DNA of 43,803 nucleotides from Guillardia theta CCMP2712 (taxonomy: Eukaryota; Protista; Cryptophyta). The position numbers were made by a program, and so were the translations under genes. Under the pieces are notes generated by a model. It ran no database searches. It was given only the letters and a program-made list of their open reading frames with translations, and had not been told where the DNA came from. How positions within the stretch are numbered: the stretch's first letter is position 1; each line of letters opens with the position of its first letter. The stretch spans positions 153,997-197,799 of the forward strand of contig NW_005434548.1 in the NCBI RefSeq assembly GCF_000315625.1. Reading direction: 5' to 3'. Shown in pieces: positions 1,143 through 33,410 of the stretch.

Positions 1143-1634
1143 CAACAACAACAACGACCACAACGACCACAACTACACTAACATCGTCGTCATCATCATC
1201 ATCATCGTCATCATCATCATTATCATCACCATGACCACCTCCACCATCATCTTCATCATCTCCATCATCTCCACTATCATCTCCACCATCATCCCTCTTC
1301 TCAACCTTCATTCCGCCATGGAGTTCCTCAAGAGGAGACTTGTGTTTGACGTAAGTGATCTGCAAAATGTCTCAGCCTGTCTTGACACCTCTTCTCAACT
1401 TCTCACGCAGATCTCAACATCCGACAGCTTGATCAGAGGGTTCATGCTGTGGTCTGCGAAGCTGCAGGGAAACGTCCCGATCACAGAGAGCAGCAAGAGC
1501 AGGAGCGGGAAGAAGCGAGGGAGATGCTGAGGGAGATACTGGTGCTGCACGGAAAGTAGGTCGAGAATTTTTCTGCGGAGAACAAGAGCAGGAAGAGCAG
1601 GAGAAGGAGCAGTAGAAGCACAAGAAGGAGCATT

Positions 1635-1672
<38 letters not shown>

Positions 1673-2009
1673 TAAGTTCACAGTCTTGACGTGTAGTCAC
1701 CTTGTGACCTCTACGATCTCCGCAGGAGCTGTAAACGCATCATCTCAGGTGTCAATCCTTCCTCCGTCTCACTCAACCTTCGCTGCTGTCCTTGTAGAAC
1801 TCAAGAGTGCCGTCTGCATGGAGGACGCACCAGACCCTCTTGCTGGAGGAAAAGAAAAAACCGTCCGATCGCCGCATCAGCATGCCTCTGATGATAGGGG
1901 TGAGGATGGGGACAGGAGAACAATAGCAAACTCACGAAAACAGGTTGTTTCCGCTTCTCTCAGTTGGCCGATTGCTGGCTCGAGAGCTGAAGCTTGATTG
2001 TTTCATCAT
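1..2009 (-). CDS. Multi-exon gene with N-terminal PH domain (downstream exon structure uncertain; may be two genes; runs off the window start)
   Basis: ATG at 2009 gives MMKQSSFSSRASNRPTERSGNNLFS, spliced via GT-AG to exon 1778-1887 GMLMRRSDGFFFSSSKRVWCVLHADGTLEFYKDSSE, a typical PH-domain beta1-beta3 pattern. Further short exons lie between microsatellite introns (e.g. ~617-703 MMNATGSLIRFLARPPLSKMPWACLMPFQ; ~220-284 hydrophobic ATFGLFLLLFLGAAILHK). Confidence 0.5.
816..1014 (+). repeat. (CAG)n microsatellite interrupted by a 100-N assembly gap (864-963)
   Basis: Pure GCA/CAG repeats on both sides of the N run. Confidence 0.95.
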
Positions 2010-2744
2010 GGTGACTTGATCAGAGTCAGTGTCAAAGAACGATGCAGTTCAACATAACATCCTATGTTTCCCTCTGACAAGAAACCATGTCCTTATCAGA
2101 GCAGTGCCCCGATATACGATCACATTGACAAACGCTTTCTTGGTTGCTCCTCTGTCGACTCTTTCACCATGGTTCTTGCATCGCGCTCTAACTTCGTCTG
2201 GTCTCGACATCATAATCTCTCCTGTTCGTCTCTTCTTCCTGCTGCCCTCACTCCTTCATTCCATCTTCGGCTCCCTTCACGTTTTGCCCTGCAACCGTCT
2301 GGTCTACAAAGCAACAAACTTGAGCTTGACTTGTCTTGCTCTCTAGTTCGCATCTCCCGACCCTTCCACCTGCGACAACGAAGGAGAACAGGATTCTTCT
2401 CGTACTATCGTCGCTTCCTCTCTGCTAGTGCCCCTTCTCACATGAGTACTACCACTAGCTCCCCATTTTGTACCAACAGCTAAAAAAGAACGTAGTCAGA
2501 GGAAGTAAATGAAGTCCGCCTCAGATAAATGCTAGCGGGGGCAGCAACTTTGCTCTACTGAGGTGTATTGAGAGTCTCACTGCCCGCACTGGCACCCAGT
2601 TATCAGAGTGCCCGGCACTGTCGCAGGTTGACTCAGTCAGCGTACTGAGAGGCCGGGCGGCAGGATCGGACAGGTGTGCGGGGCCCGGTGCTCCTCTCCG
2701 AACTCAGTCTGGTGGTTGGCCTTTCTGCTCTCCTGATCATCGGA

Positions 2745-2786
2745 TTGTCCTCGTACTGATTTTTGACTTAACTTTGGGTAAAGACT
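2745..2786 (-). other. Dispersed ~40-nt conserved intergenic motif, copy 1
   Basis: Reverse complement AGTCTTTACCCAAAGTTAAGTCAAAAATCAGTACGAGGACAA matches 12086-12124 and 37486-37527. Confidence 0.85.
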
Positions 2787-3040
2787 CAAACCGCCGGGCC
2801 CGCCCTTTCCGAGGCTCAGTCAGTGGGCCTTTCTCAGTTAGTACTGACGGTATTTATTTTCCGGGCGGCCAAGTCGTAGTTGGAATGGTCAGCTGCCACT
2901 TTAAGATCATACAAGTCTCAGGCTGTTGAAATGATGATGTTGAGGGTCAGAAACGTTTATCCACAAAGGTTGATATCTGAGAGTCGACACTTCATAGCCA
3001 GACAGCTTCGGAGCCCTAGTAAGCTTCACAAGCCTGTGCA

Positions 3041-6000
3041 CTAAAACTTCTTCTCCTCTAACAGTTGTTCCGCACTATCAAAGGCTCTGGAGATGCTGGA
3101 CACCAGCTGCTCTCGTTTCTTCTCGTTCCCTTGCAAGATCGTTGACCTCTCAATCGTCGTCAGGAGCTGATTCAAGTTGGTCGCATCTGGGAGTATAAAC
3201 TTCTGATTTTTGATGTTGTCGTCAAGTGCTTTCTTGTACGCTGCCTTGGCGCGTTTGATCTCTTCGCGGAACCTCTCATACTCCTCGTACGCCTTCTGCT
3301 CTCTCTGCTGGACAGCTGCTGAGTCTCTCTTCTCCTTGCCCATCTGTTGCCACTGGTCAACGGCGCCAGTGAGTCTGGATGACAAGTGCTTCAGCTGCTT
3401 CCCGCTCGAGCTCTCGAGGCTGGCGATGTCACGACGAAGCGCGCCGACTTGCTGAGTGAAGGGAAACACGGGCGGGGGGTGAGCTCGGTAAGAGCTGTTC
3501 TTGATCTCGTCGGTCAGGCTGTTGACTTTCTCTGCCAGGATCTGCACGTCATACTCGAGCTTGGCCTTGCCGATCTTGTCGGCAGACGAGCGGATCTTGT
3601 CGTTGACCTGCTGGATGAGACCGTCGTACCTGCTGTCCTGCATCTGCTCCATCTTGGTCTTGATCTGCTGCAGCTTAGAGCCGTTGGGACTGCCGAACCG
3701 CTCCGAGGCGATCAGTCTCTCTACCGCCATATCGTAATCCAGCAGCGCCTCGTGCAGCTCCAGCATGAGCTGATTGGCCTGCTGGTTGGCTTTACGTTCT
3801 TGGCTGAGCTGGGCGACTTCTTTAGCGCTCTGGAGCCTGGAGGAGAGATCACTTTGAAGCTTGTCGACTTGGTTGGTAAGTATGCTCAGCGAGGCCTCGT
3901 CGAGGGTTTTTTGCGAGGACTGTATCTCCTTTCTGACTTTGTCCAGGGGTGACATGTCAAGCGGCGAGAAGTCTTGCCTGTTGATCTTTCTGTCGAGCGT
4001 TGACCTTAGATTTCTCTCTGCTGTGCTGAAATGTTTGTTCACCTGAAGCATTTTGGTCTTCCACTTTGGATCGACAGACGAGATTCTTTCCCTTTGTTTC
4101 AACGCTTCTCGCTTTGCCGTCGCAAGCCTCTCAAGCAAGTGTTTCTTATCGTGTTCAACAAGCTCACACCGCTCGACATCGTTCTGCAGGCCCTGCAGCA
4201 TGTCTCTGTACATAGCGTCCACGTCGGGGTTGGCCTGCTCCATCACCTTGTAGTGAAAGGATCGGACACACCTGTCAGTTCTCTGACTCATGGCATTGAA
4301 GAACATCTGCATCGCTTTCTGCCGGGTGGTTCGAATCTTGGCGAGGAGATCTGAGCGTTGTGACTCAGAGATGTCAGGGTCGACTTTGATGCTCATCTTG
4401 AGCATCCCCAAGTGATTGAAGTCAGGAAGCTGGACAGAGTCCAAGTCGTGCCCGATCATCTCCCACACATCCGAATCGATCTTGGCGATCGCGGTATCCA
4501 CCTCCCTCACAAGCTTCGCAACGTAATGCTCACTGTTTCGTTCCAGGAGGCACTGGGTAAAGTTGCGTTGAAGGGATTTCACTTCAGCAATGACTCTGTC
4601 AGCTCCAGGCACTTTGCACTTCCTGAGCACCTTTAGGAGGTTCATTTCCTCTTCACATGCAGCTGCAAAATCTTCGCGCGTTGCAGTTGTTTGTTCAAAT
4701 CTAGTTTCAATCTTTCTGGCTGCATTTCGTTTGACTCTACGAAGAATTGACTTCAGATCCGACTGGATGGATTGAGTGAGAGGCAAGCCCAGGTGCAAGG
4801 CTTCGTACACCCGACAGCGAGTCGTTTGGAAGAGATCCATCAGGTCGTCTGCGTTGGTGAGCCCTGTGTCCTCTTTGAAGGCATGCATCGCGCTTGTGGC
4901 CACCAGGTTCTTGGCGAGAGTCTCGCAAGCCATCTTGTCGTCGCTGTTGGAGCTGAGCAGGGAGAGGAACATCTCGCGCAGGTTCTCGATGGTGACCTGG
5001 TCCCCGCCCTCATCAAGCTTGGGTGTCTTGAGCACGAGGGGGATGACAGCTTCCAGGCCGGAGAGGTCCTCGTCCTTGACGGAGAAGATGGACCGCAGGC
5101 TCTGCAGCAGCTCTCTCAGCACATCCCCGCGTCCCTCAGCAGAAGCGATGCTGGCGTAGGGGAAGGCGGCGACGATGGTGACCGACTTAGCGACGGTGAT
5201 GATCCCGCTGATGTTGATGGCGTTGGCGATCTCGAATGTCTTGCCACGCGTATCCTTGAAGCCGGGGCAGTCACAGATCGCCACCTTCCGTTTGGCGTCT
5301 CTGTACACGCCTGGCACGTCAGTCTGCGACTTTCCGCGGTCATGTCCGATGACGAAGATCTCGTTGCCATGGTCATCAGTGATGGGATCGCCCTCTGATA
5401 CGAGGTGGACAGCGCCTCTTTCTTTCTTTGCATGCAAGGAAGACATTCCTTTGATCATGGCAGTGAGGATGGTACTCTTGCCTATGCCAGTTTCACCGAT
5501 GACCATGATGCAATGCATTCCAGCAGCTTTCTTGATCTGTTTGGAAGTTGTCTGCATTTGTTTGTGAAACTCATCTAAGTCCAACTTTGTTGTATCCTCT
5601 GATTCCGTGTCATCGATTTCAGAGCGTGGGGATCCTCGTTGTGTATCACATAATTGATGATCTTCCATCTGATTGATAGAGTGCTCTTGCGATGTTTCGT
5701 TGATGCATTTATGATTGTGACGTCCAGCTTTCTTCTGTTTTGATGGTCGGGATTCGAGGAATTGAGGTTGCTCTAGAATCAAGTTTTGATGGTGATGAGG
5801 CACTAATGAGCAAGTTATTTCTGTTTTGTTCTCATGGATGCTCGAACAAAATGACTCAAGCATGGACGTCTGTGATTCACAGTTAAGATCAAGATCAAAT
5901 CAAAATCTCAGATGTTCATACATCACACGTGTTTTCTTCGACAAGATTTCCATCTTCTCGCTCACGTTTTCTATTTCTGTCCTCGGTTGTTGACTTAGCA

Positions 6001-8562
6001 ACTGCCACAAGCTCCTTAGTTCTTGATCATCGCAAACTTACATCATGTTTCACCTGTTCGCAGCTGCATTGCCGGTCTGGTCCATTCTGCCGTGAAATGA
6101 AGCTGTGACAGCCGTTGAAAGGAAGTGCTCAGTGTGTCAACCCAAGTCTCTCTGATCGCGGTCCATTCCTCCTGGTTGTCACCATCGCTGATGAGCCAAC
6201 CGCTGCTGCTCATCCAAGTCATGAGCTGAGAGACATGAGATCCTGTCAGAGCGCCTTCTTTGTGCTTTCTTGCACTTCTTATCACGAAATTACCAAAGAA
6301 AGCGCTGTTTAGTTCGCTCATCTTCAAGATCACCATGTTGCTGAATGCCTTGTCCAATCTTAAAGAATGGCCATCGAGCAAAATACTCCGACCTTCATCA
6401 GACTGAAAGAAAGTTTTCAAGAATTCTTCCATACGATGCAACGCTTGCTCTAAACTTGTGTTCACGCAGTAACAATCGGGCATGATCTGCTCTCTCCACA
6501 TCTGCAATGTTCCAAGTGAATGTCGCTTGAGCTCGGTCATAACGGTGTAGTCTAGAATTCCTATGGAAAGTTTTTCATTCGAAATTTTTATCCCCTTGGA
6601 GATCCTCCATGACTCAAATGATGGAGAAACAATCTTATACCAAAGCAAATCATTATTCAATTTCTCGAAATCGGATTTGCGAAATTTAGATGCTTTTGAT
6701 CTGTACTGAGAGAGCAACCATTCAGGATCAGACTTTGTGTCTCTTGACCATAAGAAGAAAATCAGGAATGATGAAAGAAAAAAGCAAGAATGAGAATCAT
6801 CGTCGAATATCGAGGTATCTGTTTCACATAGATTCTTCAATACTTCATCGGGAATGACTCCAACAACCCCTGGTTCACTGGAATAAGCTACCAAAACCGT
6901 CGTGCTATCTAAAAGATGCTCTGAGACTGAAGATGAAGGGATTGAGAGGCTTTCAACCAGATCAGCGATAGCCTTGCTGACGTTCTGAATCTGATCTCTT
7001 GACTCCTTTGTTTTGATAAGGCAAAGGTCTCGTGGGATTTGATGTGGGTTCAAAATCACTGCAGAATTCTGTTCTCCATTGGTTCTTGTAACACATGACA
7101 ACATGGTTTCTCGCATCTTCCTGTTATTTCCAAAGATTCCATATTGGTAATCCATGATGGCATTGAAGAACTCTGAACCTTCCACCTGGCAGCCATGATA
7201 AGTATTCCTGCAAGAAATACACCAACACCACGAAGTCGGAACAGACTCGCTGCTAGGTCTTCGAGCAAGAAATTGAGGACAACTTGACTGAGAATATGTG
7301 TCCGTGATGACAACGAAAGTCATATCATTTTCTTCAAGCATGTTTCTGTCTTCAAATTCTCTCAGCAACGAGAATAGTGTGTTTAGGCTTAGAGAATAGT
7401 CTTGAAATTCAACCTTTGTCTTGCTGTCAAACTTGAAAGTGCATGGAGCAAAGAACATCTCATTATCATGAGTCACACTCCTCCCAGCTAAAAAGACTAC
7501 AATCAGCTCGGGTAGAGCTTGGTCGTAACATCGCAAACTCTCTCGTATGAACGTGATCAAATCTGTCTTGCTCCCTGGGTCCTTCAGGATCGAGGAATGT
7601 GCTCTGGAGCTTTGAGAAAGAGATCTGTCAAACTGAGTTGCTTCTTGCACAAAGCATGAAAGTCTGTAATCTTCGGTTGCATAGTTGTCAGCACCGATGC
7701 TAAGCCCAACAACCCTTGGTGCCTCGAGAAAAATGACTTCATAGGAATAGGGAAGGACATCTTTGATTGGAACGACTTCTTGATCATTCCTGGAAGAGTG
7801 TCCGATCTTGCTTGCACTGAAAAACAAAATTTCAGCTGAGCAAACTCATGGCAAGCAAGAGTATTCATAATTCAAGAAATAGAATGGAGCACTGCCTAAT
7901 TATTATTTTCATCATGAGAACTTCAAATCTCAGTTACAATCTTCATACGTCTAGTACCAATTCTTTCGAGCGAAAAGTTTTCTTGCCTTCTCGCTTCGTG
8001 TTGCAAGGCATAATAGTTTCATCAGAGACAGAGGGCATTCACCACGATGCTGCTGCTGATTGTTCTTCTCGGAGAAGATTCCATCCCTGTCAAACACAAC
8101 GTAACTTTTTTTCGTTTCTGTTCTTCTTGACATTTCGTTTTTCCTCTCAATACTTTGGACCACTGCAATGTCAAAATCCCTTGCGCGGTTGAAAATGGGC
8201 TTCGAGGATGAGCGATTTGACCATTCATCAGATGTGAAGATTTCAAGACACACATCTTGCAGCTCATCATCTTCAGTATGGAAGAAATAAAGACGCGCAA
8301 GAGCATCAACCCAAGCTCCCCGAGGAGTTTCAGGAACAAGGCCCTCTCTTGCATAAGGTCTATCAACAATGCATGACAACCTCGTCGACCCGCTTGCGAC
8401 TCTCTCATATAAATCATCCAAGATGACCTTGTCTGCTACAAATGCACCCACTCCTTCGGGAGATTGCTGGGTGTTGCAAATAGCAAAGCGTCTTAGAAGA
8501 TCCGAAGAAATGCGACAAACATGCTCGCGGTCCATAAATTTTTTTCTGCATTGAACGATCAA
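3041..8562 (-). CDS. Predicted fusion gene: unknown N-terminal region + inactive caspase-fold (peptidase C14-like) domain + TRAFAC-type P-loop GTPase + long coiled coil (true start probably ~8.6-8.7 kb)
   Basis: ORFs 7951-8562, 6043-7827 and 3041-5863 join in frame through GT-AG introns 7817-7957, 6087-6141, 6015-6053 and 5870-5921 (bridging exons NGPDRQCSCEQ and ELVAVAKSTTEDRNRKREREDGNLVEENTCD). GTPase motifs VIGETGIGKST and DCPGFKDTRG. Caspase-fold pattern VVGLSIGADNY...LIVVFLAGRS...FVVITDTYS. Confidence 0.7.
3089..5539 (-). repeat. Left arm of ~2.45-kb inverted duplication (GTPase + coiled-coil coding region)
   Basis: Reverse complement of 9418-11865. Alternative-frame ORF translations are identical between arms (e.g. 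4776-5159 vs 9798-10181; 5116-5433 vs 9524-9841). Confidence 0.97.
7017..7715 (-). other. Caspase/metacaspase-like (C14) domain lacking the catalytic dyad
   Basis: Order and spacing match ALxIGNxxY / xVFxxAGHG / xVILDACR, but the His position is R (AGRS, ~7477-7488) and the Cys position is Y (DTYS, ~7291-7303). Confidence 0.65.
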
Positions 8563-8899
8563 GCAAAGGCAATGCTAACTATTCAACAACAGGTAGAAAA
8601 CTCGCAATTTTCTACTTGAGACTAAAACGATATGAAATCTCTTATCTCTGCCTCGCACCTTGCACCACTTCTACGACAACATCTTGCATGGCTTTCATCC
8701 TGCATGTGTTGCTCATGGTGAAGTAAGTACAAAATTCTCTCTTGTTACTGCCATCAGCATTTCCTTCACGCTTTCTTTAACCTCCTACCGCGTCGCTCTC
8801 TTGGTATCTTGCTTCTTTCCTCCTCCTCCCCTCTTCACTTCTCCTCCTCCTCCCCTGCTACCTTCCCTCAGACCATGCTTGTGTGCATTCCAAAGTTCC

Positions 8900-9240
8900 C
8901 ACCAACCTGCATCACCCCACCCTACTGACATCGACCTCGCGCCAAAAAGTCGCCCTCCACCCCAGCATCCTACTCTGAGTACCCACCCTTCTTCATGGTT
9001 GCCTACCCCCACTCGATCTATATGATAGTTCCTAGCTCAAGTTTACGACCTTCTCGTGGCCGCAAGGGTACTGGGGCTGAGTCCAAGGTGAGTGTGCATT
9101 GCAGGGAGGGGTGGTATATGATTGAGCAAAGTGGGGGTGATAGAGGTAAGTTGGTGGGGTCATCCAATGTAGGATGCAATGCCGATGGGGGTAGTGTAAT
9201 TCATCAGTCATCGGTAACGAGGGGTAGGGTAGTTCACAAA
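8900..9240. promoter_or_regulatory. Probable bidirectional promoter between the divergent GTPase genes
   Basis: CACCCC/TACCC-rich left half switches near 9040 to a GGGGTG/GGGTAG-rich right half, so each sense strand is G-rich just upstream of its gene. Confidence 0.45.
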
Positions 9241-9249
9241 AGCGCAGAT

Positions 9250-11988
9250 ATGGGAGACGAAGGAAGAACGAAAAGAGGACGAGAACAAAAGAAACAAAGC
9301 CAGGAAGCAAATACACCCAAGAAAGCAAGAAACAGTCTAGAAGATGCTGAAGAGCAAGAAACAAAGATCGACATTGACATCCAAACCCTCAATGAGCTGG
9401 TTCATGCTTCATCAGAGCAGATCAAAAAAGCTGCTGGAATGCATTGCATCATGGTCATCGGCAAGACCGGAATAGGCAAGAGTACCATCCTCACTGCCAT
9501 GATCAAAGGAATGTCTTCCTTGCATGCAAAGAAAGAAAGAGGCGCTGTCCACCTCGTATCAGAGGGCGATCCCATCACTGATGACCATGGCAACGAGATC
9601 TTCGTCATCGGACATGACCGCGGAAAGTCGCAGACTGACGTGCCAGGCGTGTACAGAGACGCCAAACGGAAGGTGGCGATCTGTGACTGCCCCGGCTTCA
9701 AGGATACGCGTGGCAAGACATTCGAGATCGCCAACGCCATCAACATCAGCGGGATCATCACCGTCGCTAAGTCGGTCACCATCGTCGCCGCCTTCCCCTA
9801 CGCCAGCATCGCTTCTGCTGAGGGACGCGGGGATGTGCTGAGAGAGCTGCTGCAGAGCCTGCGGTCCATCTTCTCCGTCAAGGACGAGGACCTCTCCGGC
9901 CTGGAAGCTGTCATCCCCCTCGTGCTCAAGACACCCAAGCTTGATGAGGGCGGGGACCAGGTCACCATCGAGAACCTGCGCGAGATGTTCCTCTCCCTGC
10001 TCAGCTCCAACAGCGACGACAAGATGGCTTGCGAGACTCTCGCCAAGAACCTGGTGGCCACAAGCGCGATGCATGCCTTCAAAGAGGACACAGGGCTCAC
10101 CAACGCAGACGACCTGATGGATCTCTTCCAAACGACTCGCTGTCGGGTGTACGAAGCCTTGCACCTGGGCTTGCCTCTCACTCAATCCATCCAGTCGGAT
10201 CTTCAAGAAATTTACAATGACTTGAAGGAGACAGCTAATGTGAAAATGGCTCAGGTTTCCATGGATCAGGCTGAGCCAGGAGATTTCGCAGCTGCATGTG
10301 AAGAAGAAATGAACTTCCTAAAGGTGCTCAGGAAGTACAAGGTGCCTGGAGCTGACAGAGTTCTGAACGCGATTCGAGCGACAACGTATAGAAGAAAAAA
10401 GACTGTAAAACAACAGAATACAAACAACAAAGAAAAAAAGCTTACGAGGGAGCTGGATAACGCTATCGCCAAGATTGATTCGGATGTGTGGGAGATGATC
10501 GGGCACGACTTGGACTCTGTCCAGCTTCCTGACTTCAATCACTTGGGGAAGCTCAAGATGAGCATCAAAGACGACCCTGACATCTCTGAGTCACAACGCT
10601 CAGATCTCCTCGCCAAGATTCGAACCACCCGGCAGAAAGCGATGCAGATGTTCTTCAATGCCATGAGTCAGAGAACTGACAGGTGTGTCCGATCCTTTCA
10701 CTACAAGGTGATGGAGCAGGCCAACCCCGACGTGGACGCTATGTACAGAGACATGCTGCAGGGCCTGCAGAACGATGTCGAGCGGTGTGAGCTTGTTGAA
10801 CACGATAAGAAAGACTTGCTTGAGAGGCTTGCGACGGCAAAACGAGAAGCGTTGAAACAAAGGGAAAGAATCTCGTCTGTCGATCCAAAGTGGAAGACCA
10901 AAATGAATGAAATCAGCTCAATTCTGAGCACAGCAGAGAGAAATCTAAGGTCAACGCTCGACAGAAAGATCAACAGACAAGACTTCTCGCCGCTTGACAT
11001 GTCACCCCTGGACAAAGTCAGAAAGGAGATACAGTCCTCGCAAAAAACCCTCGACGAGGCCTCGCTGAGCATACTTACCAACCAAGTCGACAAGCTTCAA
11101 AGTGATCTCTCCTCCAGGCTCCAGAGCGCTAAAGAAGTCGCCCAGCTCAGCCAAGAACGTAAAGCCAACCAGCAGGCCAATCAGCTCATGCTGGAGCTGC
11201 ACGAGGCGCTGCTGGATTACGATATGGCGGTAGAGAGACTGATCGCCTCGGAGCGGTTCGGCAGTCCCAACGGCTCTAAGCTGCAGCAGATCAAGACCAA
11301 GATGGAGCAGATGCAGGACAGCAGGTACGACGGTCTCATCCAGCAGGTCAACGACAAGATTCGATCGTCTGCCGACAAGATCGGCAAGGCCAAGCTCGAG
11401 TATGACGTGCAGATCCTGACAGAGAAAGTCAACAGCCTGACCGACGAGATCAAGAACAGCTCTTACCGAGCTCACCCCCCGCCCGTGTTTCCCTTCACTC
11501 AGCAAGTCGGCGCGCTTCGTCGTGACATCGCCAGCCTCGAGAGCTCGAGCGGGAAGCAGCTGAAGCACTTGTCATCCAGACTCACTGGCGCCGTTGACCA
11601 GTGGCAACAGATGGGCAAGGAGAAGAGAGACTCAGCAGCTGTCCAGCAGAGAGAGCAGAAGGCGTACGAGGAGTATGAGAGGTTCCGCAAAGAGATCAAA
11701 CGCGCCAAGGCAGCGTACAAGAAAGCGTTTTTTGACAACATGGATAGGGAGAAGTTGATGCTTCCAGATGCGACCAACTTGAATCAGCTCCTGACGACGA
11801 TTGAGAGGTCAACGATCTTGCAAGGGAACGAGAAGAAACGAGAGCAGCTGGTGTCCAGCATCTCCGATACGCTTTCCCAAGCGAGCTCACAGCTAGATGA
11901 CTTTAAAGCACGACATAAGGAAATGGAGATATCTCGGCGGCGAGAGGCTCAAGCTTCTGGCCATAATCAGTCATGCGTTGTTTGTTGA
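9250..11988 (+). CDS. Large P-loop GTPase (AIG1/GIMAP/MMR_HSR1-like G domain) with coiled coil and C-terminal CaaX (CVVC)
   Basis: Within ORF 8995-11988; likely start ATG 9250 (MGDEGRTKR). G1 VIGKTGIGKST, G2-like SQT, G3 DCPG. Several hundred aa of helical/charged tail; ends ...HNQSCVVC*. Confidence 0.85.
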   Translation: MGDEGRTKRGREQKKQSQEANTPKKARNSLEDAEEQETKIDIDIQTLNELVHASSEQIKKAAGMHCIMVIGKTGIGKSTILTAMIKGMSSLHAKKERGAVHLVSEGDPITDDHGNEIFVIGHDRGKSQTDVPGVYRDAKRKVAICDCPGFKDTRGKTFEIANAINISGIITVAKSVTIVAAFPYASIASAEGRGDVLRELLQSLRSIFSVKDEDLSGLEAVIPLVLKTPKLDEGGDQVTIENLREMFLSLLSSNSDDKMACETLAKNLVATSAMHAFKEDTGLTNADDLMDLFQTTRCRVYEALHLGLPLTQSIQSDLQEIYNDLKETANVKMAQVSMDQAEPGDFAAACEEEMNFLKVLRKYKVPGADRVLNAIRATTYRRKKTVKQQNTNNKEKKLTRELDNAIAKIDSDVWEMIGHDLDSVQLPDFNHLGKLKMSIKDDPDISESQRSDLLAKIRTTRQKAMQMFFNAMSQRTDRCVRSFHYKVMEQANPDVDAMYRDMLQGLQNDVERCELVEHDKKDLLERLATAKREALKQRERISSVDPKWKTKMNEISSILSTAERNLRSTLDRKINRQDFSPLDMSPLDKVRKEIQSSQKTLDEASLSILTNQVDKLQSDLSSRLQSAKEVAQLSQERKANQQANQLMLELHEALLDYDMAVERLIASERFGSPNGSKLQQIKTKMEQMQDSRYDGLIQQVNDKIRSSADKIGKAKLEYDVQILTEKVNSLTDEIKNSSYRAHPPPVFPFTQQVGALRRDIASLESSSGKQLKHLSSRLTGAVDQWQQMGKEKRDSAAVQQREQKAYEEYERFRKEIKRAKAAYKKAFFDNMDREKLMLPDATNLNQLLTTIERSTILQGNEKKREQLVSSISDTLSQASSQLDDFKARHKEMEISRRREAQASGHNQSCVVC
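9418..11865 (+). repeat. Right arm of ~2.45-kb inverted duplication
   Basis: Reverse complement of 3089-5539; 3 nt shorter, matching a one-residue indel in the first variable block. Confidence 0.97.
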
Positions 11989-31959: not shown

Positions 31960-32540
31960 GAGTGAGAGAGAGAAAGGGAGAGAGACAGAGAGACAGAGGG
32001 ACAGAGGGACAGAGGAAGAAGAAAGAGAGAGAGAAGGAGGGAGGGAGGAGAGAGAGGGAGAGAGGTAGGGAGGGCAAGAGGGAGGGAGGGAGGGAGGGAG
32101 GGAGGGAGAGGAGGGAAGGAGGGAGAGGAAAGAGAGAGAGAAGGAGAAGGAGAGAGAAGGAGAGAGAAGGAGAGCCGGATCCAACTCATCGCCGTCNNNN
32201 NNNNNNNNNNNNNNNNNNNNNNNNNNNNNNNNNNNNNNNNNNNNNNNNNNNNNNNNNNNNNNNNNNNNNNNNNNNNNNNNNNNNNNNNNNNNNNNNAAGA
32301 GAAGGGAGGGAGGGAGGGAGGGAGGGAGGGAGGGAGGGAGGGAGGGAGGGAGGGAGGGAGGGAGGGAGGGGGGGAGACAGAGAGTGGGTAGGGGAGAGAG
32401 AGCGTGGGCGAGAGAAAGAGTGAGAGACAGAGAGGGGGGGAGGGGTTGAGACAGAGAGGGAAAAAGAGAGTGAATGAGAGAGATGTAGAGTGAGTCAGAG
32501 AGAGCCAGAGGGGGGCAGAGGGAGACACAGATGATGAGGG
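31960..32540 (+). repeat. Polypurine (GA/GGGA)n low-complexity tract with a 100-N gap (32197-32296)
   Basis: Direct reading. Confidence 0.9.
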
Positions 32541-32822
32541 AGAGTTTGTGTGAGTGTTTATTTGTGGGAGTGTGTTTGCGGCTCGTGTCATGCCAAGGAC
32601 TCAGCTGTGTCGTTGTGGGTGGTACGGTCGCGGCTGACCGTCGGCAATGGCATCCGTGATAGTGGGACTCTAGCATAGGGTTTAGGTCCTGCACCGAGAG
32701 CACAATGATGGGTTGATTAGCCAAGCCCCCTCGATATTCAAAGTGAGCGGAGCATTTTGACTCACTTTACTTGACAATCAGGATTTTTGAGATGAAAGAA
32801 TAAGATTGAAATTTACAAGCAT

Positions 32823-33410
32823 TTATTTGCCAGAAGTGTCTTGGTGAGTCTTGTTGAGTCGGCTGAAATACTTCTGCGCATGAGACCGGACTTGCGAAGC
32901 TGTGCGAGTTCTGACGTGCAAAGAAATCAGTTGCGCTACCCCTTCTCCCAATCCCACGCTCTTGTTGCCCCTTCTCTTCGAATTCATTCGCAGATCACCG
33001 TACTTCTCCAAGCCAGCCAGAAAAAGATTATGCTCTTCTTCTGTCCATGCGTTTCTGAGCAAGGGCTCTGGACTCCACGACTCCGTAGAGCATTGCTGCG
33101 GAGGCCACGAAGCTGAAGTGTTGCTGACGTTGTCTGATTCGGAGACAATATTGGAGCTGAAGTGCCCAGATGCAGTGAAAAAGTCTGGTGTTTCATGATG
33201 GCTGGGAGCTAAATCATAGAATGACGCGCCCTGATTGCAGCATATCTCGCAATCCTCATCGCAGACGTCGAATGAGCTCGAGTGGTGATGCTGATCCCAG
33301 CTTTGATTATTGCAATTTTCCGATCTCAGCCCGTGCATGTCATCGATAACAGGTGCAACAGTCGAGCTTGAAGCATAATGCAACCACGACGACTGCAAGT
33401 CTTCTGCCAT
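32823..33410 (-). CDS. SHAQKYF-class single-repeat MYB transcription factor
   Basis: WTEEEHNLFLAGLEKYG...ISLHVRTRTASQVRSHAQKYF; probable ATG at 33410 (MAEDLQSS). Confidence 0.93.
   Translation of the reverse strand: MAEDLQSSWLHYASSSTVAPVIDDMHGLRSENCNNQSWDQHHHSSSFDVCDEDCEICCNQGASFYDLAPSHHETPDFFTASGHFSSNIVSESDNVSNTSASWPPQQCSTESWSPEPLLRNAWTEEEHNLFLAGLEKYGDLRMNSKRRGNKSVGLGEGVAQLISLHVRTRTASQVRSHAQKYFSRLNKTHQDTSGK

Follow-up and report, generated by a model that had tools for sequence, protein, structure and literature searches.

Here we describe a gene in the nuclear genome of Guillardia theta CCMP2712, a cryptophyte, in which splicing joins a catalytically dead caspase-like domain in frame with a P-loop G domain. 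The analysis was done on a window of 43,803 nucleotides (the whole stretch of DNA that was analysed), and the stretch under study is the 5′ two-thirds of this one gene, which has four exons and lies on the minus strand (8535 to 3041). The protein is composed, in order, of an N-terminal region of ~190 aa, the dead caspase-fold domain, a further domain of ~290 aa (C-dom), a linker, the P-loop G domain and a tail of ~600 aa, and it belongs, as an inactive representative, to a large family of proteins with caspase heads whose function would lie in signalling. Taken as a whole, the data are probably best explained by a fused gene of 1749 aa whose dead domain acts as a non-cleaving binding module tethered to a scaffold.

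The gene model is based on spliced RNA contigs from two independent studies (X1 and X2). Three GT-AG introns were found on the minus strand (CT..AC on the plus strand), at 7817-7957 (intron 1, 141 nt, phase 2, joint 7816|7958), 6002-6053 (intron 2, 52 nt, phase 1, joint 6001|6054) and 5870-5921 (intron 3, 52 nt, phase 0, joint 5869|5922). All three joints occur in X1 and in X2, in the former on one contig of 3848 nt that extends from 8847 to 4755, and a DNA run (X10) contains all three intron stretches unspliced. The joints were read from assembled contigs and do not by themselves prove that a single molecule reaches from exon A into the G domain (the raw RNA reads numbered six, too few to decide), and within exon D the RNA contigs cover only 4755-5869. 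The initial annotation had linked three open reading frames through four introns; the single frame is borne out by the RNA contigs, but the introns are three in number. The introns it had placed at 7817-7957 (phase 2) and 5870-5921 agree exactly with the contig joints, the one at 6015-6053 had the right donor (6053) but a wrong acceptor (6002 being the real one), and the one at 6087-6141 is coding sequence, as the RNA contigs are gapless over 6054-7816 and this segment encodes the family-invariant Phe566. Of its two bridging exons, the one given as 93 nt is exon C (5922-6001, minus strand), which is 80 nt long and consists of 2 nt and 26 stop-free codons of basic and acidic character, and the one of 33 nt does not exist, since 6087-6141 is no intron.

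Coding starts at the first ATG (8535) in exon A (7958-8535, minus strand; aa 1-192 and two bases of codon 193), upstream of which a 5′ leader with eight ATGs (8536-8847) is present in the X1 contig, and it ends at the stop codon 3041-3043. The joined exons hold 1762 open codons in total, the 1749 aa being counted from the first ATG. Both in-frame stops, the TGA at 6043-6045 that closes the 594-aa ORF and the TAA after it, lie inside intron 2, and the junctions on either side of exon C restore the frame. In L030, a related strain from the environment, the same two 52-nt introns occur, with a 1010-codon open frame across them. Because intron 2 removes both stops, the junctions restore the frame and L030 keeps both introns and frame, the fused frame is more than a product of chance. 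The length and ends of intron 2 are identical in the relative L001 and in L030, and exon C is conserved in both; compared with L001, the introns carry non-triplet indels (in intron 1 they are not divisible by 3) and the exons only a single indel of 3 nt.

In the public gene call the GTPase is a separate protein of 838 aa and no public call was returned for the caspase-like part, leaving the gene of 1749 residues unannotated; the fused frame given here corrects that model. It is conceivable that two separate proteins are made, a pseudo-caspase of ~780 aa or less and a G protein that starts either at the ATG at 5863 or at the Met of the 838-aa call, and that the spliced form arises by read-through that conjoins the transcripts of adjacent genes. 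The public call for the G domain alone, the apparently self-contained protein recorded in Hanusia (P0002, 591 aa) and a neighbouring paralogue that is a stand-alone G protein would agree with this, and so would the linker (5552-5869, minus strand, ~105 aa), with which exon D starts and which includes the ATG at 5863 that heads a free-standing 940-aa ORF. Compared with L030, the linker has a pN of 0.068 and a pS of 0.064; it evolves neutrally, with no detectable constraint, as an untranslated region would also show. However, the only form assembled in both transcriptomes is without intron 2, in which all of the stop codons lie, no intron-retaining contig was seen among the RNA contigs of X1 and X2, the upstream ORF would lack a stop without the downstream exons, and the exactly restored frame also persists in a divergent strain. 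Separate proteins are on this evidence unlikely, and an additional internal promoter may also be present.

The dead caspase-fold (C14-like) domain lies at 7003-7728 (minus strand, residues ~223-464) and was delimited by AF2, Foldseek, VIA and alignments. Its AF2 model has a pLDDT of 85.3 and a pTM of 0.83. The top 50 Foldseek matches are all caspase-fold proteins (MALT1, caspases, metacaspases, GSU0716), the best being MALT1 at E 7.6e-10, and MALT1, procaspase-1 and CED-3 were matched at E 7.6e-10 to 1e-5. By VIA the model was aligned to MALT1 with Z 21.5 (198 aligned residues, rmsd 2.8, model residues 15-253) and to caspases-7, -8 and -9 with Z 19-20, and Atlas features gave 0.95 to C14 clusters. 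Structure prediction followed by Foldseek, which the initial annotation had suggested, thus returned the caspase-hemoglobinase fold that it had named. In the Pfam check that it had also suggested, the domain's own sequence is below the PF00656 gathering score, and neither the 594-aa ORF nor the 284-aa domain matched at E up to 1.

Arg305 (codon 7480-7482) stands in place of the catalytic His and Tyr367 (codon 7294-7296) in place of the catalytic Cys, at alignment positions occupied by His and Cys in at least 90% of the relatives. The reading of AGHG as AGRS and of DACR as DTYS was recovered in the alignments, in which LAGRS (Arg305) and TDTYS (Tyr367) fall on the AGHG and DACR of the paralogues; the Gly of HG and the Arg of CR are also replaced. 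The presence or absence of the dyad is not always predictive of activity in C14 homologues (PMC5756287), and the domain could in principle still be a protease through other catalytic residues, but both dyad positions are changed, to the very pair of the inactive cFLIP(L), and the adjoining Gly and Arg are changed with them, which makes this extremely improbable. By fold and homology the domain is assigned to C14/clan CD as a homologue and not as an active member, and it is predicted to be unable to cleave.

Searches within the genome were done over 87.1 Mb in 669 contigs. The caspase-fold family has at least 30 matches in Guillardia theta, where it is expanded in tandem arrays, and the paralogues, one of which is GUITHDRAFT_146844, were matched at E 9e-70 to 1e-8. 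With the window's protein as query, phmmer returned 28 proteins, and PF00656 was found in 21 of the 29 relatives that were scanned; the profile matches 11 of 11 paralogues, with 28.7-38 bits for four scanned singly against a cut-off of 21.4. Paralogues that retain His and Cys, for which the initial annotation had proposed a search, are the rule: 18 of the 20 examined keep both AGHG and DACR, and the window's lineage alone is without both residues.

The C-dom (6055-6918, minus strand, ~290-300 aa) is a conserved alpha/beta domain with invariant Trp, Phe and Ser positions. It always stands after the caspase-fold domain in the family, and in paralogues also after CHAT domains; fold searches gave no match and its fold is unrecognised. 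The module formed by the two domains, like the caspase-fold family itself, has so far been found only in cryptophytes and in metagenomic relatives. Paralogous modules are located just upstream of kinase ORFs, or are fused to a GREB1-type helicase, to NACHT-WD40 or to ankyrin repeats, and one paralogue (L026) has a CHAT-like domain, the C-dom, NACHT (29 bits against 26.7) and WD40 in one open frame. Among the other G-domain loci found, none shares a contig with a listed caspase-like module. The architecture had been called unusual, and within this genome the pairing with a G domain does appear to be so, but fusion as such is a habit of the family. The product of exon A had no family match in the Pfam scan, and its residues 78-190 have weak similarity to stretches directly upstream of eight paralogous modules.

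AGRS together with DTYS or DTFS is present in the window's gene and in its orthologues from a metagenome relative (P0001) and Hanusia phi (P0002), and these three sequences form a clade supported at 100/100, whose stem is long (1.47 changes per column). The Hanusia orthologue is 44% identical and has the same substitutions. The alignments and the tree indicate that the dyad was lost once, before the Guillardia-Hanusia split, and the dN/dS values against L001 (0.44 in exon A, 0.42 in exon B), at about 0.4, indicate moderate purifying selection on the dead domain since the loss. It may be asked whether the caspase-like part is a decaying, functionless relic that is carried along by a working GTPase gene, as both catalytic residues are gone, the stem is long, the domain is under the Pfam threshold and such a dN/dS is moderate constraint only. 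Against this, the shared substitutions at that level of identity place the survival of the domain before the split of the genera, neither a stop nor a frameshift interrupts the domain region, a complete caspase fold is predicted with confidence, and the gene is transcribed and spliced, so that a relic is very unlikely. The recorded Hanusia P0002 protein corresponds closely to exon B, with its Met close to the beginning and its end close to the end of that exon, and from this extent the fusion may have arisen later than the pseudo-domain, or a stand-alone form of the module may be produced as well.

In human cFLIP(L), R315 and Y360 replace the His and Cys (PMC7586951). The window's domain is like cFLIP(L)/CFLAR in its complete caspase fold, in the absent dyad with identical His to Arg and Cys to Tyr replacements and in being a paralogue of active enzymes within the same genome. 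Unlike cFLIP, which bears two death-effector domains and ends with its caspase-like domain, the window's protein continues with the C-dom, the G domain and the long tail, and no death-effector domain was found in it by the Pfam scan. In the tree its domain is placed inside a clade of Guillardia, Hanusia and metagenomic sequences and not in the caspase-8/10 lineage. We regard it, on tree and architecture, as a cFLIP analogue of independent origin and not as a member; the Arg/Tyr match may reflect easy mutations, as each is one base change from the His and Cys codons.

In cyanobacterial pseudo-orthocaspases and in TbMC4 of Trypanosoma brucei both catalytic residues are substituted, and the proteins are nevertheless maintained and expressed (PMC6426788, PMC5756287). 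They are likewise non-animal C14 homologues without the dyad, but they have mostly Tyr and Ser at its positions, the former are bacterial and the latter belongs to another protist lineage, and for neither has a fusion with a G domain been described. MALT1, the best structural match, is likewise a scaffold protein of several domains, in which another domain comes after the caspase domain, but it is active (His and Cys), flanked by death and Ig domains and only ~15% identical. From Guillardia theta itself the metacaspase-like proteins GtMC3-GtMC14 have been reported, GtMC13 without the dyad, and algal metacaspase-like proteases are reviewed as consisting of the p20 domain only (PMC5756287). These share organism and superfamily with the present gene, but the caspase homologues described here are not p20-only and form the heads of large multidomain proteins, one of them NLR-like. 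It seems unlikely that GtMC13 is this gene, because the domain is invisible to PF00656; neither a metacaspase-type prodomain (zinc finger, proline-rich repeat) nor a rearranged p10 was reported by the Pfam scan. L026 resembles the NLR-like/STAND proteins with an N-terminal caspase fold, the module being in the position of the N-terminal effector head. The window's protein differs from them in having a small TRAFAC-type G domain and helical tail as its NTPase part, and in the Pfam scan it gave, for NACHT or other STAND NTPases, only sub-threshold nSTAND matches through its P-loop.

The P-loop G domain (4844-5551, minus strand) was recognised from Atlas features (0.97 to MMR_HSR1/AIG1-type G domains, 208/256 shared) and from its G motifs, with G1 as GETGIGKS at 5474-5497 (residues 932-939) and G3 as DCPG at 5261-5272 (residues 1007-1010). 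For G4, only PKLD at 5012-5023 (residues 1090-1093) is found at the place expected for [NT]KxD, as a possible candidate. The Pfam G-domain profiles were below cut-off (MMR_HSR1 14.9 bits against 21.9, RsgA_GTPase 17.9 against 30), and the PDB search gave weak septin, Rab and dynein-LIC matches. The domain is assigned to the MMR_HSR1/AIG1 type, a small TRAFAC-type domain with putative use of GTP rather than ATP. The tail with the stop codon (3041-4843, minus strand, ~600 aa) is rich in Leu, Lys, Gln, Glu and Arg and has no Pfam domain; from its composition it is presumed to be long and helical or coiled-coil.

We infer, as the initial annotation did, a regulatory, decoy or scaffold role for the fused dead domain. 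By analogy with cFLIP(L) or the pseudo-metacaspase TbMC4, it would most likely be a binding module, which may bind the active paralogues or their substrates, and the bound partners would be tethered to a scaffold assembled through GTP binding and the coiled coil. A bolder and rather doubtful proposal is that cryptophytes have a repertoire of their own for cell-death or immune signalling, with heads of caspase-fold protease and C-dom on NACHT-WD40, kinase, helicase and GTPase bodies, and that this gene is its cFLIP, of independent origin and with a convergent Arg/Tyr dead site, which would bind the active heads while anchored to a GTP-controlled coiled-coil scaffold. In either case a eukaryotic, non-animal pseudo-caspase with the Arg/Tyr pair of cFLIP(L) is added in a new domain combination, and a concrete protein is provided as a starting point for testing whether dead paralogues came to regulate caspase-type proteases on more than one occasion.

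The dead domain might also be an integrated decoy, a mimic of the active paralogues which traps a viral or parasite inhibitor or protease and so switches on the GTPase and coiled coil, as in plant NLRs. The occurrence of paralogous modules on NACHT-WD40 and kinase proteins, architectures of immune-type appearance, the tandem expansion of the family and the head-to-head pairing with the neighbouring paralogue are in keeping with this, but the domain is conserved between genera and not visibly diversifying. No pathogen factor for this is known, and a decoy is considered improbable beside the binding module proposed above. The neighbouring paralogue (8995-11988, plus strand, a 997-aa ORF) consists solely of a G domain and tail preceded by a different N-terminus, lacks any caspase-like part, and is an inverted copy of 3089-5539 with 97-99% identity.

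The window (C126:153997-197799) lies in the nuclear genome of the cryptophyte alga Guillardia theta CCMP2712, and the searches of that genome were done on its 87.1-Mb assembly of 669 contigs. Three minus-strand ORFs were read at the locus, of 203 aa (7951-8562), 594 aa (6043-7827) and 940 aa (3041-5863), and four sequencing runs were compared over window positions 4600-8990. The RNA run X1 (study P1) gave a single 3848-nt contig composed of the segments 8847-7958, 7816-6054, 6001-5922 and 5869-4755, and a second RNA run, X2 (study P2), gave the same three joints spread over two contigs. All of the skipped pieces have GT..AG ends when read on the minus strand (CT..AC on the plus strand), and the DNA run X10 covers the same places without joints; therefore the joints represent splicing and not deletions. 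The X1 contig breaks off at 4755, at a branch in the assembly graph that coincides with the end of a near-identical inverted copy. The raw RNA reads X15 contained six reads at the locus, which are insufficient for defining starts, ends or strand.

The hidden fusion described in the initial annotation is real, largely as first described, with its introns corrected. The introns placed at 7817-7957 (phase 2) and 5870-5921 coincide exactly with joints of the RNA contigs. For the one placed at 6015-6053 the donor (6053) was right, and the acceptor at 6015 is superseded by 6002 according to the RNA contigs. The fourth, at 6087-6141, is ruled out as an intron, since the RNA contigs keep the stretch and it codes for conserved residues, including the family-invariant Phe566. 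Intron 2 (6002-6053) holds the TGA which closes the 594-aa ORF as well as the next TAA, and the four joined exons (A to D) are open over 1762 codons; translation from the first ATG, at 8535, gives 1749 aa before the stop at 3041. Among the contigs assembled from the RNA runs at the locus none retains an intron; the upstream ORF consequently lacks a stop codon unless it reads on into the G-domain exon, and it is improbable that separate proteins are made from a conjoined transcript. In the protein collection an 838-aa gene call covers the G domain alone, the neighbouring gene is a 912-aa call, and the caspase-like ORF had no gene call among those returned. The 5′ leader in the RNA contig (8536-8847) has eight upstream ATGs; either the true transcription start is further downstream or the leader overlaps transcripts from the divergent neighbour, which has its ATG at 8995.

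Comparative support came from two metagenome contigs, L001 and L030, both of one environmental sample (ERZ930064). L001 is about 7% diverged from the locus and its protein has 88% amino acid identity to that of the window. Its intron 1 carries indels of 12, 1, 1 and 5 nt, and exon B has a single 3-nt indel in 1761 nt; intron 2 has kept its length and GT..AG ends, and exon C is open with two amino acid changes. Constraint is seen in the dN/dS values against L001: exon A has 0.44, the caspase-like part 0.375 and the conserved domain that follows it (C-dom) 0.49. It is very unlikely that the caspase-like part is a relic domain. Pseudogene status of the gene is rejected on its expression, intact frame and dN/dS. 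L030 spans the junction; after removal of the same two 52-nt introns as in the window (6002-6053 and 5870-5921) it has an uninterrupted frame of 1010 codons, running from the C-dom end through the G domain. The linker of about 105 aa at the start of exon D has 17 non-synonymous and 4 synonymous changes relative to L030 (pN 0.068, pS 0.064); it lacks constraint, as either a disordered linker or untranslated sequence would. Upstream of exon D, L030 matches the window exactly, and from there on it differs by about 6%; it may be a recombinant or a chimeric assembly of two strains from the sample.

Scanned directly against Pfam, NCBIfam and PADLOC, exon A, the pseudo-caspase domain and the C-dom gave nothing significant, so the proposed assignment to PF00656 is not obtained from the window's own domain. 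A search of the same genome with this domain returned at least 30 matches, 12 of them near full-length at 26-30% identity and many of these in a tandem array on contig C97. PF00656 was matched by all 11 aligned paralogues (four scanned individually exceed the curated cut-off) and by 21 of 29 scanned sequences comprising the window's domain and the relatives found in an exhaustive protein search, which gave only 28 relatives among 1.84 billion representatives. The suggested caspase-hemoglobinase fold was borne out by structure prediction. The AlphaFold model from a 33-sequence alignment has pLDDT 85.3 and pTM 0.83, and its top 50 Foldseek matches are all caspase-fold proteins, led by MALT1 (E 7.6e-10) and followed by procaspase-1, GSU0716, CED-3, caspase-9 and metacaspases. 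VIA gave MALT1 at Z 21.5 (198 residues, 2.8 A) and caspases-7, -8 and -9 at Z 19-20, and the ESM Atlas feature search gave C14 clusters (0.95). A search of PDB sequences with a 14-member family profile matched RsfS only, which was judged to be chance.

The motifs had been read accurately at the outset, the window having FLAGRS and ITDTYS where the paralogues have FYAGHG and IDACR. The recommended search for paralogues with an intact dyad found both residues in 18 of the 20 examined, the remaining two having Cys replaced by Gly; compared with these 20, both residues are lost in the feature gene only, the His of one (L028) being masked. With both catalytic residues replaced, residual protease activity of the domain is considered extremely unlikely. 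The two Cys to Gly copies belong to the tandem array and read DAGR instead of DACR: L005 (G000:C97:226514-231175) keeps its His, and in L028 (G000:C97:165500-170500) the His stretch is masked (N). Judged from sequence, they are possible further pseudo-variants of independent origin.

The maximum-likelihood tree groups the window's domain with the L001 protein (P0001) and a Hanusia phi protein (P0002), with 100/100 support for the clade and a long stem of 1.47 changes per column leading to it. P0002 is a predicted protein of 591 aa with 44% identity which reads ACRC and DTFS, and an active Guillardia-Hanusia pair (L003 and P0003) is placed near the dead clade. As the dead copies of Guillardia and Hanusia form one clade, loss of the dyad preceded the split of the genera, and the domain has persisted ever since. 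Human cFLIP(L) has R315 and Y360 at the dyad positions (PMC7586951), and the feature gene has the same two replacements, Arg for His and Tyr for Cys. Arg and Tyr are each one base change from His and Cys codons, and mutational ease may explain the match. Dead C14 homologues are also known among cyanobacterial pseudo-orthocaspases and in TbMC4 (PMC6426788); according to a review, algal metacaspase-like proteases have no domain besides p20, and GtMC13 of G. theta lacks the dyad (PMC5756287). The feature gene sets a pseudo-caspase, itself of a known kind, in a new architecture and brings into view a family seen so far only in cryptophytes and metagenomic relatives.

The partners of this family are varied. 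At two paralogous loci the downstream ORFs are protein kinases; these kinase domains (L003:3-995 and L004:2-1336, minus) lie directly downstream of active caspase-like modules in a different frame, and by analogy with the window's locus are probably joined to them by introns. In annotated paralogues, of 2974 and 3011 aa, C14 occurs together with a circularly permuted GREB1-type helicase, and a TAGT glycosyltransferase match below threshold is also present. The C-dom is also found after CHAT domains. In L026 (G000:C118:110000-119000) the frame 1533-6617 minus encodes 1695 aa with a sub-threshold CHAT-like domain, C-dom, NACHT (29 bits, cut-off 26.7), pentapeptide repeats and a WD40 propeller, a predicted NLR-like cryptophyte protein with a caspase-fold head. 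In L027 (G000:C4:308000-316000) the frame 1596-5879 minus encodes 1428 aa with CHAT (26.7 bits, cut-off 24), C-dom and ankyrin repeats. From these varied partners, the caspase-fold and C-dom unit is regarded as a mobile head placed N-terminally on signalling bodies, of which one is NLR-like. At least ten caspase-like modules stand in tandem at G000:C97 ~155000-232000, where the public annotation is fragmentary (e.g. GUITHDRAFT_116565 of 126 aa and GUITHDRAFT_116560 of 277 aa).

Exon A had no family match in profile scans; its residues 78-190 gave weak matches (E 1e-4 to 5e-3) to eight stretches, and because each lies directly upstream of a paralogous module, exon A is taken as part of the family's unit. 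The C-dom, of about 290 aa, has invariant Trp, Phe and Ser positions, and the named proteins carrying it are all from Guillardia or Hanusia. Its best Foldseek match against PDB had E 0.036 and TM 0.14, the ESM Atlas shape search reached TM ≤0.34, and the VIA-wide search gave at best Z 6.0 with RRM-like pieces, within noise. Its fold is unrecognised, which does not imply novelty as the model is of moderate confidence only (pLDDT 73).

The 940-aa ORF has the P-loop GETGIGKS, DCPG and a possible G4 motif PKLD. Pfam gave only sub-threshold GTPase matches, the Atlas feature search gave 0.97 to MMR_HSR1/AIG1-type G domains, and the weak PADLOC matches, LeoBC (E 5.5e-6) and mad8 (E 1.1e-4), are both driven by the P-loop region. 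The tail is rich in Leu, Lys, Gln, Glu and Arg and is presumed, by composition, to be a coiled coil. We propose that the dead domain would bind active paralogues or their substrates without itself being catalytic, anchored on a coiled-coil scaffold under nucleotide control. A complex prediction of the dead domain with the L003 caspase domain scored 0.00 without controls, and speaks neither for nor against binding. A role as an integrated decoy is unlikely. The G-domain family has few members: besides the feature gene and its inverted neighbour there are one relative at 33% and a few more distant ones. None of the other G-domain loci found shares a contig with a listed caspase-like module, and the pairing is unique to this locus.

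The G-domain and tail genes at 3089-5539 and 9418-11865 lie head to head as inverted copies; three blocks (1428, 785 and 81 nt) are 97-99% identical, and short diverged stretches separate them at ~4517-4592 and ~4674-4754, which suggests a recent duplication or gene conversion. The plus-strand copy ends in CVVC, a possible prenylation box. In 1-kb bins, positions 1-1000 and 32001-33000 have very strong GC skews of +0.54 and +0.50 together with AT skew, unlike the rest of the window, and are probably strand-biased repeats.
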